A DNA stretch of 64,000 nt, taken from positions 124,001 through 188,000 of the IMG/VR virus record IMGVR_UViG_3300031957_002643. One strand, 5' to 3'. Positions within the stretch are counted from its first letter, which is position 1, and each line of letters starts with the position of its first letter. The position numbers were made by a program, and so were the translations under genes. Positions 2,765-59,952 of this stretch are shown here, one piece after another. The notes beneath the pieces are model-generated. The model was not told where the DNA came from and did not search any database. It saw only the letters and a list, made by a program, of their open reading frames with translations.

Positions 2765-2914
2765 TCTAAATTAATGACTGCCGATACCAGTCAGTTACTA
2801 CTCGCTGCTTATCAGCATGACCGCAACCAAGGTGCTGCTCGGGTCCAAGGAACGAATTCCTCTTGATCTTTAACGACCATGGGACATATGCATGGTCAGG
2901 GATATTTATATGAC

Positions 2915-2944
2915 AAAGCCCCAAGGCTTTCGCCAAGGGGCTTT
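2915..2944. terminator. Hairpin terminator downstream of the tmRNA
   Basis: AAAGCCCC...GGGGCTTT stem with an internal hairpin, flanked by A/T runs. Confidence 0.7.
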
Positions 2945-3237
2945 TTCTGTTTCGAGGGTTGTCAGACCCCAAGTGGCTTACGCAGCGATGCGAGCCTCAA
3001 CGGCAAAATCATTATCATTTGCAGTTATTTAAGTTGTGCCTATAACGGGCCACACCCGGCAATCTCAACTTCGCTAATACACACCCATCGATCCTATTTC
3101 GCCCCCATCAGCAGCACATACTGTCGCCATGTTCGCTACGCCGGTCATGACCAAACCTTAAAGTATGTGCTGTTGGTGGAGGCGTCGGGTACTGCCCCCG
3201 AGTCTGGTCTGCTGTTCGCTCCGCATCATCAATTACA
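2945..3237 (-). ncRNA. ssrA: Permuted two-piece tmRNA (alphaproteobacterial type), tag ANDNDFAVEARIAA
   Basis: Acceptor piece ending GACTCGGGGGCAGTACCCGACGCCTCCACCA (CCA at 3174) comes first, then an intervening 11-bp hairpin, then the coding piece starting GGGGGCGAAATAGGATCGA (3106). Tag frame 3022..2978. TTGACA-17-TATAAG promoter at 3272..3244. Confidence 0.95.
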
Positions 3238-3268
3238 AATATACTTATAAGGGTTACCGATTCAAATG

Positions 3269-3555
3269 TCAACCGGTTTTTTGCTTATTGTCAGAATTTC
3301 TTCCAATATGGTATCCATCACAAAATAAGCACTTGTAGTTGCTGTAATAGTAGCCGTACTTTTTCTGCATTTTTTGTGCAGCCTTAGTGGCAGATTTCTT
3401 GCTTCCATAGGCAATCTTTGGCTGACCATTCGCATTTTCATGAGAGCGCCTACTACGAAGGCCTCGCATGTGACCTTTGCGCAGATTTCTCAAAAAGCGA
3501 GTTAAGGGGCCTTGGTCCAAAACAACCAGCCAGAGGTTTCTAAGTTTAATCATGT
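3269..3555 (-). CDS. Small basic hypothetical protein with C-x2-C..H motif (start approximate)
   Basis: C-terminal part of track ORF 3269..3742, YKCLFCDGYHIG. Confidence 0.55.
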
Positions 3556-8580: not shown

Positions 8581-9246
8581 TTAGACGTTACCGTTGCCAC
8601 CGATACCAGTTGAACTATTACCGAATAGACCTTCGATCTCAGGTGCGTGATCGTAATCGCCAAGCATGTTGCCGTTTTCGTCATAAACCGTGCAGTTATC
8701 GAAACGAAGGGTCAATGAAAGTTCTGTTGGATCAGCACTTTCATATTGCATCTCGGAAATTTCTTCACCTGTGATCTGACAACCGACAAGACACCACTTT
8801 TGAAGAATGTTAGGGTCTTGTGCAGACTGTCCAGCAGAAGCACCACCAGCAAGGACATCAATATCCAATTCGAACTTGTAATTCTCACCAGCACGAGATG
8901 CGGTTTGATCAAAGAAGTTGAATTGCTTAGAACGCTGCTTCTGAATCTTTTCAAGAACAGTGTTATCGATGTCTTCATGGAAACGAACAGTGATGTCATT
9001 CCACTCTGGACGGGTTTGTGCATAAACAATCGAATTGTAGCTGTATAGTGTTGCAGTTTCGAATGATGCAGTTGGTCGTGTAATAGCTTTAATCGCTCTG
9101 GTCAAATCATATGGTGCGGTATCACCCGGTGCACCAAAGTTGTTAAAGACAACACGGAAACGGTTTGTTAGAACCGGCTGTAGAACTGGTGATCTTTCAC
9201 CGTTCATTCCCGGCACACCAAAATTTTGTAATGAATTAACGCTCAT
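8581..9246 (-). CDS. Tail tube protein (gp19-like)
   Basis: NRFRVVF, ITRPTASF, WNDITVRFHED, WCLVGC, LTLRFD. Confidence 0.8.
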   Translation of the reverse strand: MSVNSLQNFGVPGMNGERSPVLQPVLTNRFRVVFNNFGAPGDTAPYDLTRAIKAITRPTASFETATLYSYNSIVYAQTRPEWNDITVRFHEDIDNTVLEKIQKQRSKQFNFFDQTASRAGENYKFELDIDVLAGGASAGQSAQDPNILQKWCLVGCQITGEEISEMQYESADPTELSLTLRFDNCTVYDENGNMLGDYDHAPEIEGLFGNSSTGIGGNGNV

Positions 9247-14558: not shown

Positions 14559-14634
14559 TGGCAGGGGCATCAGGACTCGAACCCGAAGTTTCTGTTTTGG
14601 AGACAGACGTGTTAGCCATTAACACTATACCCCT
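14559..14634 (-). tRNA. trnW: tRNA-Trp(CCA)
   Basis: TCTGT-CTCCAAA-ACAGA, G73, CCA. Confidence 0.95.
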
Positions 14635-18524: not shown

Positions 18525-19027
18525 TCAAAGATCGGTTTGTTGAACAGATCGATTGCACGACGAGCAGTTGATGCCAGACGGTAGCGAGTCTGTTCGCCCG
18601 ATTTAGTGTTCGATGTCGAAACACTGATGATTTCGACCGGAACATTGTTTTGGTCCGTGAAACCGGCTTTCACTGCACGATCACGGAAGGCGTTCACGAC
18701 ACCTTCGATTGCAGCGGTATTCAATTCACGATCAAACCCTTTTAGGGAAAGAGATCGTTTTGCCGGATGAAGGTCACGCAGAACACGCTTCATCATCGGT
18801 GTCAGAGAACAAAGCAGGGTATTTGCTTGTTCCAGACTCGGTTCATTCTTGAATTCATTGGGGAGATCACTTGAACCGAAAAGAAGCGCAAAATGCTTTT
18901 CAGCACGCCGGGCAAGAGAAGTTTCATCATGAACGATGATAGAAGTGGGATGGGTTTCAGCCAGTTTCTTCAGAGTAGAAACATCGGAAGAACGAATGAT
19001 AACGGCAGGCATTGATTTCTCCTTCAT
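18521..19027 (-). CDS. Hypothetical protein
   Basis: ORF track. Confidence 0.7.
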   Translation of the reverse strand: MKEKSMPAVIIRSSDVSTLKKLAETHPTSIIVHDETSLARRAEKHFALLFGSSDLPNEFKNEPSLEQANTLLCSLTPMMKRVLRDLHPAKRSLSLKGFDRELNTAAIEGVVNAFRDRAVKAGFTDQNNVPVEIISVSTSNTKSGEQTRYRLASTARRAIDLFNKPIFD

Positions 19028-19109
19028 GACTAGCCATAAGGTATCAAATCATGTACGTTTTGATTTGTCAACTGATAAGTAACATCATCAACAAAGAGGA
19101 CATTCAATT

Positions 19110-19778
19110 ATGAAACTCGAAATTAGACCCGGTGAAGGTGGTGAAGATTCTCGCCTCTTCATGAAGGACCTCGCATCAGCATACACGAAACTATTTTCCC
19201 GTTTCGGTTGAAAGTGGGACCGCACTGATCATGACAACATGATCATCCTTTATGTAACCAAGACGGACAAACGGTTGCATAATGAATCGGGCGGTCATCG
19301 TATCCAACGTATACCTCCAACTGAAAAACGTGGGCGTGTTCATACGTCAACGGTCACTGTAGCTGTGCTTGAAGACATCAAATCTGATCCAAGATATGAC
19401 ATGCGTGATGAAGAACACTTTTACAAAGAATGGTTTTCAGGAACCGGCAATGGTGGTCAACATCGCAACAAGCATCAAAACTCACTGCGATTATATCATA
19501 CACCAACGGGCTTGTTGACCACAGAACAAGGAAAAAGTCGTACATCGAATGAAGCAACCGCAATGAAGCGGATGAATAAGATGCTCGATGAGATGAAGTA
19601 TGGTGCATCTCAGAACGATTTGAACGATGATCGTCAATCAAAAATTGGTTCCGGTATGCGTGCTGACAAGATACGCACTTATCGTTTCCAAGACGATCAG
19701 GTCAATGATCACCAGACAGGAAAGAAAACAACTTGCAAACGAATTATGAGGGGGCACTTTGATGATCTTTGGAAATAA
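19110..19778 (+). CDS. Class I peptide chain release factor, RF1-type (PxT), lacking domain 1, with in-frame TGA at 19209..19211
   Basis: AGAGGA SD, then MKLEIRPGEGGEDSRLF...SRFG*KW continuing in the same frame into ESGGHRIQRIPPTEKRGRVHTST, GNGGQHRNK and KIRTYRF. Confidence 0.9.
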
Positions 19779-21011: not shown

Positions 21012-21958
21012 TGAAGAAGCCCTCAGACACAAGGTCCAAGGGCTTCTAAAGCTTGGCCACATGCTATCCTTACAGACCCGCATGTACTCTTTTGAAAGCC
21101 TGAGATTAAGGCTTCTAACGATGACCTTTGGACCGCACCGAAGCCCTTGCGAGGCTTGTTAATCCGTTATCCACAAATTGGTGTCACCACTCAACTTGTA
21201 TTCACCAGTGCTGCCTTTTTTGAGGTGTGGCCTTTCACCTGTCACGCTGTGCTATTCGTCAGACTTTGATCCACCTGCCTTGCGAGCAGTTCGAGGTTGC
21301 AGCCCCTATGAACTCCGTTCTAACAATCATCTTTGGCTTGCGGCCTCCGATGAACCCTGTTCCTTACTAGGCAGGGTATTAAGCACTTTTCACACAACGC
21401 CGAACCAGTCTTTGCGTTTTATCTTCTGAGAAGGGGTTGAACCTTCGACAGATCGCTTTGAATGCGATTGCTCTACCACTGAGCTATCAGTAACCTACCT
21501 CGATGTGCTGGTCCTGTTGCTTCGCTACCTGTTGGTAACAAAATACAACACACCGACTGTCGTTCACCCGCTAAGGCTAATAAACCAAACTTCTGGATTA
21601 GTCATCACCACCAAAGTGATGCCGTCACCCATTGTTTTGCGAACCGCCCTTACCCGCTAAGGCTCGAACCTGTCCACTATCCGTTAACCATCACATTCAA
21701 CCGTTTAGCATGTGAATCTGCGGGTGCTAACCGCACAGGTCTCGGTGTTACCCAAACCTTCATCACCGGTCTTACTGCTTAGCGCATCCATGGCTGAATA
21801 CGCGCCCTAATAGGCTTGGCTCGGACTTGTATAGCTGAACCATTGCTGGCGCGAGTATGTAGGAATTCCCGCTTTGGGCTGGTTACCCAGCTTATTCTTA
21901 ATGGACGCTATACCGCCCAAACTCTTATTTCATTTCCCAGTGGCCGTAACCACATCGT
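21012..21958 (-). ncRNA. Large structured ncRNA, GOLLD-like, with an embedded tRNA-like domain
   Basis: ~950 nt without a credible ORF; TTTACA-17-TATATA promoter at 21994..21966; many minus-strand hairpins with GTAA/GCAA loops; 3' hairpin at about 21016..21046. Confidence 0.65.
21422..21493 (-). tRNA. tRNA-like element with UCA (opal-reading) anticodon; imperfect acceptor stem, no CCA
   Basis: TA-GCTC-AGTGGTA-GAGC, ATCGC-ATTCAAA-GCGAT, GAAGG-TTCAACC-CCTTC. Confidence 0.75.
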
Positions 21959-26165: not shown

Positions 26166-26260
26166 TGGCTCCCATCTGAGGTATCGAACCTCACCCGCGT
26201 CTCATCAACGCAGACCTCCGGTTAACAGCCGGGTACCTTCACCGTGCCAGTCCGATGGGA
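26166..26260 (-). tRNA. trnN: tRNA-Asn(GTT) with long variable arm
   Basis: CCCGG-CTGTTAA-CCGGA, ~24-nt variable region, 7-bp acceptor, GCCA. Confidence 0.8.
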
Positions 26261-26261
26261 A

Positions 26262-26345
26262 TGGTGGGTAGAGTGAGAGTCGAACTCACGGGGCTTGCGC
26301 ATCGGTTTTACAGACCGCTCCCGCCCCCTACGGGACTACCTACCC
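26262..26345 (-). tRNA. trnY: tRNA-Tyr(GTA)
   Basis: GCGGT-CTGTAAA-ACCGA, variable arm, CCA. Confidence 0.92.
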
Positions 26346-59658: not shown

Positions 59659-59952
59659 GTGGGTGTGGCGAAATGGTAGACGCGACAGACTTATAGTGAT
59701 TGAGTGCTCTCTTAGAAATAGGAGATGTAGAACTGCTCAAATTCGGGGAAACCTGTAAAATGGCAATCCCGAGCCAAGCTTTCCTGAAAAGGATTGAAGG
59801 TGTAGAGACTAGACGGGCAGCATCTAAGTTGGGAAACCAATATGATGAAGGGATAGTCCAGACTACAAACCGTAATGGGCAGCGAAAGCTGTAGTTAGTA
59901 CGAAAATCTGTTTCCTTATGGAGTGGGGGTTCGAGTCCCCCCACCCACACCA
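59659..59952 (+). tRNA. trnL: tRNA-Leu(TAA), interrupted (exons 59659..59692 and 59903..59952)
   Basis: Spliced anticodon arm ACAGA-CTTAAAA-TCTGT; acceptor GTGGGTG/CACCCAC; ACCA. Confidence 0.95.
59693..59902 (+). mobile_element. Group I intron (IC3/trnL-type), 210 nt, no ORF
   Basis: 5' exon ends in U and intron ends in G; core elements AATTCGGGGAAACC, AATCCCGAGC, GTAGAGACTAGA, GAAGGGATAGTCC. Confidence 0.93.

Follow-up and report, generated by a model that had tools for sequence, protein, structure and literature searches.

Why should a phage gene for a translation termination factor carry a UGA stop where a tryptophan codon belongs? The gene lies at positions 19110-19778 (+) of the window, by which we mean the whole 64,000-nucleotide stretch analysed here (positions 124,001 to 188,000 of IMG/VR record IMGVR_UViG_3300031957_002643, a viral contig of 335,552 bp), and encodes a compact RF1-type factor in a giant phage. 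The same interruption is kept in nearly all of about 90 diverged relatives read at the DNA level, so that it looks like a built-in regulatory read-through site rather than a broken gene. The window also carries a tail-sheath gene, 20 tRNA genes and a permuted, alpha-type tmRNA at 2887-3276 (-) with the tag peptide ANDNDFAVEARIAA.

The architecture of the gene is readily described. A Shine-Dalgarno-like GAGG at 19096-19099 (+) lies 10 nt before the ATG at 19110, which opens 33 sense codons (MKLEIRPGEGGEDS...SRFG; 19110-19208) that include the helix alpha-5 tip motif EGGED (19134-19148). TGA follows at 19209-19211, in the context GGT TGA A, and the same frame then continues for 188 codons (19212-19778) through PPT (19314-19322) and GGQ (19452-19460) to TAA at 19776-19778, giving 222 positions if read through. 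An in-frame TAA at 19080, 30 nt upstream of the ATG, together with a divergent gene ending at 19027, leaves no room for a release-factor domain 1. The two pieces were searched apart. In Pfam the N-terminal piece, the start of domain 2, matches PCRF positions 104-131 (and positions 116-141 of the NCBIfam prfA model), whereas the C-terminal piece, which covers the rest of domain 2 and domain 4, matches PCRF 164-194 plus the RF-1 domain. The TGA aligns with the Trp of 'RKGW' in Thermotoga maritima RF1 and with the G-W column of family members. Everything that the first-pass annotation had described at this locus, from the start codon and the in-frame TGA to the PPT and GGQ motifs, is thus present.

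Is the TGA a sign that the phage has reassigned this codon? Counting open reading frames under alternative codes was uninformative, because removing any stop inflates ORFs in all frames, and we therefore used a greedy gene map under the standard code. This covers 81% of the window, and TGA ends about 34 of its 93 gene calls, several in ATGA overlaps; the three TGA-terminated genes cited in the first-pass annotation (20663, 46419 and 51273) are confirmed. A search for genes split by a single in-frame stop, with coding potential on both sides, returned only this gene for TGA. All 46 relatives with at least 8 kb of sequence likewise have TGA-terminated ORFs, with a median of 31% of ORFs. The many in-frame TGAs and rare TGA stops of a code 4 phage are therefore not found.

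The TGA is conserved across the family. Megablast against GenBank phages gave no match, and tblastn gave only generic release-factor hits below 40% identity, so that no cultured phage there carries a close relative. A protein search with the C-terminal piece, in contrast, returned 4,892 hits. Most were called at 167-190 residues, the length obtained by starting after the TGA, and a minority of 218-240 residues carry Trp at the column. These longer entries could be taken for uninterrupted genes, but this was rejected once the DNA was read for seven of the eight looked up. Four have TGA at the canonical column and were evidently called under code 4, two have a TGA shifted by 2-4 codons, and one (protein P0036, locus L168), the only uninterrupted TGG copy found, is a genuine TGG version, showing that the TGA is not indispensable. 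A scan of viral contigs found 390 relatives, of which 80 were fetched. All 74 with a complete 5' part, comprising 63 distinct sequences at roughly 50-57% amino acid identity to the window, have an in-frame TGA at or within two codons of this column, never TAA or TAG. The flanking codons vary synonymously, the preceding Gly codon among GGC, GGT, GGA and GGG. In three lineages, the loci L048, L084 and L167, the TGA has moved 2-4 codons downstream; the canonical column is TGG in L048 and L084 and Leu in L167. This suggests that the early TGA itself is selected, not only the Trp column. Bacterial genomes supplied 15 more in-frame cases, including isolates of Thalassospira, Pararhizobium, Jiella and Gemmobacter, and plasmids of Bosea (pBSY19_1, locus L165, 3890-4561) and Variovorax (locus L166, 2827-3531) have it as well. 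Public annotation misses the recoding: in RefSeq the Bosea gene is not called at all, a hypothetical protein being placed on the opposite strand, and the Variovorax gene is split into a 56-residue hypothetical protein and a truncated 'release factor-like protein'.

Selection acts on both sides of the TGA. The N-terminal piece, of 33-35 codons, has pS 0.47 and pN 0.027, a ratio of 0.057 that denotes strong purifying selection, and the C-terminal piece is conserved, with 30 invariant columns. In 53 of the 63 distinct sequences there is no in-frame ATG within about 65 codons after the TGA. In the window an ATG does occur at 19239, but it has no comparable Shine-Dalgarno element and lies inside a hairpin arm.

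The context of the TGA is that of a weak terminator. The base that follows it is A in 44 sequences, G in 13, C in 6 and T in none, against T in 82 of 270 real TGA stops (30%) of the same phages (p = 2e-9), although the sequences are related, so that the test overstates their independence, and the next codon is under protein constraint. In the window this base is A. The 60 nt downstream fold better than other windows of the same genes, even though their G+C content is lower. In 40 of 63 sequences, a count subject to the same kinship, pairing starts exactly at +8, and across 27 sequence clusters most have a stable stem starting 5-9 nt after the TGA, built from different sequences. RNAalifold found no single consensus structure, the region having indels and its subgroups using different registers, and a count over named structures was used instead. 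In an ungapped alignment of 50 sequences a helix pairing +8..+18 with +59..+69 is 85% paired, against 76 ± 0.7% in shuffles, with all 10 pairs changed on both sides (0 of 500 shuffles as high), and pairing falls to 47-51% when the partners are slid by one column. A second subfamily of 10 sequences has a different, local hairpin starting at +6, with a covariation score of 0.39 against 0.21 (0 of 500), but here the pair-count measures are not significant. The window belongs to neither group and has too few close relatives for such a comparison; its own stem-loop at 19216-19249 (+) comprises 4 bp (19216-19219 with 19246-19249), a 6-nt bulge and a perfect 8-bp hairpin at 19226-19245 that starts 14 nt after the TGA and contains the ATG at 19239 in its 3' arm. 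The minimum free energy fold of 19195-19290 gives -30 kcal/mol (z = -3.0). This hairpin is followed by a T-rich tail and is flagged as terminator-like, but with one such site found against 2.1 expected it is not above chance as an intrinsic terminator or attenuator.

What kind of factor does the gene encode? The C-terminal piece scores 151 bits with the NCBIfam prfA (RF1) model, 89 with prfB (RF2) and 28 with prfH, against curated cut-offs of 400, 370 and 167, and a full-length homolog reaches only 192 bits with prfA. A PDB search with the homolog P0057 places RF1 (141 bits) ahead of RF2 (about 84 bits), and the match to solved RF1 structures (E = 1e-40) settles the fold. The alignment begins at RF1 residue ~89, and the recognition loop (QRVPPTE..GRVHTS) matches RF1 almost residue for residue, predicting that the factor does not read UGA. 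One family-wide difference stands out, in that the helix alpha-5 tip reads EGGxD[SA], with an invariant Asp, where canonical factors have GTGG[DE]EA, with Glu in both RF1 and RF2. The protein is therefore an RF1-like factor without domain 1, and neither an orthodox PrfA nor a PrfH. Like PrfH (RF-H) and ArfB it is a compact GGQ factor lacking domain 1, but no RtcB partner was seen among the 10 neighbouring ORFs scanned, none of which matched any RNA-ligase family and only two of which had any Pfam match, and unlike ArfB it keeps the full codon-recognition domain with PxT. Pfam searches of neighbours in the window and in Thalassospira gave almost nothing informative, apart from the tail sheath in the former and an AbiEii toxin domain in the latter.

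A sister clade carries a prfB-like cassette at the same site. In 35 bacterial-genome loci (L086, L102-L126, L129-L162), from Myxococcota, Thiobacillus, Chloroflexota and others, the N-terminal piece lies in another frame and ends in CTT TGA (26 loci) or CTT TAG (9 loci), with C as the next base in 31 and a GGAGG- or GGGGG-type element 2-4 nt upstream in 24. This is the prfB +1 frameshift cassette, one codon away from the position of the phage TGA. TGA and TAG swap between close relatives, and TAA is never used. Three Myxococcales loci are uninterrupted, with Tyr at the column, and a subgroup inside this clade (L128, L131, L148 and the Variovorax plasmid) has an in-frame TGA at a later position. 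In the tree, of which only the unrooted splits are used because the outgroup row was poorly chosen, the read-through clade (46 rows) is separated from the rest with SH-aLRT support of 99.

Which tRNA might decode the UGA? A tRNA with anticodon UCA at 21422-21493 (-), 1.6 kb downstream, was detected by ARAGORN and by Rfam (55 bits), and lies in the linker of a full-length GOLLD RNA (RF02032, 177 bits) at 21097-21556 (-), an arrangement already described for GOLLD. It is atypical, with no encoded CCA end, A73 and a mismatched acceptor stem (U1·G72 and A3·A70), and it resembles no tRNA-Trp. It is the only UCA tRNA among 526 tRNAs in the window plus 79 related loci, and none of 60 relatives has one within 6 kb of the gene. 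The closest relative (L002) keeps the TGA and has a syntenic GOLLD (8718-9131) without the tRNA, and bacterial and plasmid carriers show no such tRNA near the gene. We therefore reject it as a conserved partner, although it may be an accessory decoder specific to this lineage. Near-cognate reading of UGA by tRNA-Trp(CCA) is the usual source of UGA read-through in bacteria, making this the most economical decoder, and the phage has its own tRNA-Trp(CCA) at 14559-14634 (-), detected by ARAGORN and Rfam, with G73 and an encoded CCA end, whose role here is inferred.

Our preferred reading, to which we assign a probability of about 0.62, is that codon 34 is a programmed recoding site in a gene that belongs to a large family carried by huge phages, plasmids and tRNA-array islands. 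Most ribosomes would terminate there through host RF2, releasing a 33-residue peptide, while a fraction would read through, most likely with near-cognate tRNA-Trp(CCA) from the host or the phage, to make the full-length factor. Output would then track the balance between UGA termination and tRNA decoding, acting as a sensor of termination capacity like the prfB frameshift site but built on read-through. The comparative analysis itself establishes the conservation of the TGA, the selection on both pieces, the weak-termination context, the downstream helices in relatives and the prfB-like cassette of the sister clade; the production of a read-through protein and its efficiency, the identity of the decoder, the regulatory role, the stop-codon specificity of the factor and what it does for its mobile-element hosts are inferred from sequence alone. 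Since the recognition loop is of RF1 type, a UGA sensor would not report on the factor's own activity, and the feedback loop is not obviously closed. In this phage, moreover, a dedicated tRNA(UCA) could make decoding efficient, so that the site would be a gate and not a sensor. The interpretation offered in the first-pass annotation is thus only partly supported. The condition under which it would have failed, homologs lacking the TGA, was examined and clearly did not hold; the assignment as RF1-type without domain 1 and the exclusion of genome-wide recoding are supported, and programmed read-through is well supported by the comparative evidence, far better than a pseudogene. Its link to an opal-reading tRNA is weak, and its proposals that the factor is made only when RF2 activity is low, and that it acts as a rescue switch, remain inferences, with the interchange of TGA and TAG in the sister clade complicating a simple RF2 cross-regulation story.

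The alternatives carry less weight. True autoregulation, in which the short factor reads UGA (and UAG) despite its PxT motif and terminates its own synthesis when abundant, with read-through or frameshifting restoring it when scarce, would give a self-contained homeostat like prfB. The exchange of TGA and TAG in the sister clade is hard to explain if only one host factor is being sensed, and the invariant Asp at the alpha-5 tip also favours it, but the RF1-like recognition loop, the HMM scores and the exclusive use of TGA in the read-through clade count against it, and we regard it as possible but unlikely. If it were true, a mobile-element factor of broadened specificity (UGA as well as UAG/UAA) would provide the first read-through-based autoregulation of a bacterial-type release factor, an arrangement proposed before prfB was sequenced and listed as unknown in a 2016 review, and would travel with tRNA arrays, tmRNA and GOLLD as a portable translation module. 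A suppressor-tRNA gate, in which the factor is made only once the UCA tRNA is expressed and is so timed within the infection cycle, as proposed for code-change modules in recoded phages, draws support from the proximity of that tRNA and from the reported rise of GOLLD late in infection. The features of the tRNA given above, its absence near the gene in the relatives and the lack of any other gene in the window that needs TGA decoding make it improbable.

Still less likely is a fixed throttle that merely holds a potentially harmful factor at a constant level of a few percent. Overproduced release factors do reduce fitness (PMC12421855), and a leaky context is compatible with a set low yield, but a weak ribosome-binding site or promoter would be simpler, and the persistence of the TGA, its relocation and the parallel cassette in the sister clade all point to a responsive device. 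A sequencing error or pseudogene, which a single in-frame stop in one metagenomic contig would normally suggest, is all but excluded by the recurrence of the TGA in dozens of independent assemblies and by the low pN/pS, as is genome-wide code 4 by the use of TGA as a normal stop. Selenocysteine insertion, to which the ARAGORN label 'SeC' for the UCA tRNA and the hairpin after the UGA might point, fails equally, since the aligned residues are W, Y, L or F, never Cys, and the 72-nt tRNA has no long variable arm or other tRNA-Sec features. Two separately translated polypeptides are likewise all but excluded, by a stop that is always TGA with no T after it and usually no restart codon.

How does this compare with systems already described? 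In prfB, too, a class-I release-factor gene is interrupted early by an in-frame stop, so that yield depends on how slowly that stop is decoded. In the window, however, the frame continues unchanged, the site is in domain 2 and not domain 1, and UGA is not the factor's own codon by the PxT rule. A 2025 survey reports no programmed frameshift in prfA and no TAG in 8,164 prfB motifs (PMC12421855), in contrast to the TAG variants of the sister clade. The class-I release factor of Mimivirus and Megavirus also requires stop-codon recoding (PMC3521657), but it is an eRF1/aRF1-type protein of giant viruses of amoebae and needs one read-through plus one frameshift, whereas here a bacterial RF1-type factor in phages, plasmids and bacteria has a single UGA. 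In the Q-beta A1 protein and in alphavirus-type read-through a leaky UGA is decoded by near-cognate tRNA, with an RNA helix about 8 nt downstream in the animal-virus cases. Those cases yield a C-terminally extended second product, whereas here the short product is presumably inert and the read-through product would be the only functional one, making the device regulatory. The RF1 genes in code-change modules of TGA-recoded phages (Borges et al., 10.1101/2021.08.26.457843) likewise occur with tRNAs, including suppressor tRNAs, but those modules are written in standard code and serve genomes with many in-frame TGAs, while in the present genome TGA is a stop and the release-factor gene is the only interrupted gene seen.

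Regulation of a release factor by its own kind of signal is a textbook case, but one known only for prfB, by frameshifting. A 2016 review (PMC5009743) states that no RF2 gene has an early same-frame UGA and that the UAG/RF1 counterpart is unknown, citing only the giant-virus eRF1 gene as a viral parallel, and we found no description of the interruption in this family in literature searches that reached few subscription-journal papers and so do not prove its absence. The family appears to supply a natural read-through version, in hundreds of phage contigs and in bacterial genomes and plasmids, with a sister clade that reinvents or retains the prfB cassette, including the UAG versions. Because gene callers truncate, split or miss these genes, or translate them under code 4, the family is invisible in annotation. 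It offers a way to study how mobile elements that import tRNA arrays keep termination and decoding in balance, and a compact domain-1-less factor of possible use in genetic-code engineering.

Finally, the gene is typically embedded in or next to large tRNA arrays, and often next to a tmRNA, as in L005, L014 (beta-type), L025 and L079, where the tmRNA lies directly next to it. 'RF-1' genes in mycobacterial tRNA arrays have been mentioned without any note of an interruption (PMC5966550). Arrays of 19 and 31 tRNAs within 12 kb surround the short release-factor gene in Gemmobacter caeni (L096) and Thiobacillus denitrificans (L107), and in the latter a tRNA-Trp lies directly upstream of it. Amber-suppressor-type tRNAs (CUA), and one of ochre type (UUA), lie a few kb from an RF1-type gene and a tmRNA in L014 (11535-11681), L025 (9710-9785) and L079 (9962-10038), an odd combination since RF1 terminates at those same codons. 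The tRNA cluster of the window itself includes an unusually long (95-nt) tRNA-Asn at 26166-26260 (-) and a tRNA-Tyr with a marginal Rfam score (31 bits) at 26262-26341 (-), and a group I intron match just at threshold (50.8 bits against a cut-off of 50) is found at 59691-59875 (+).
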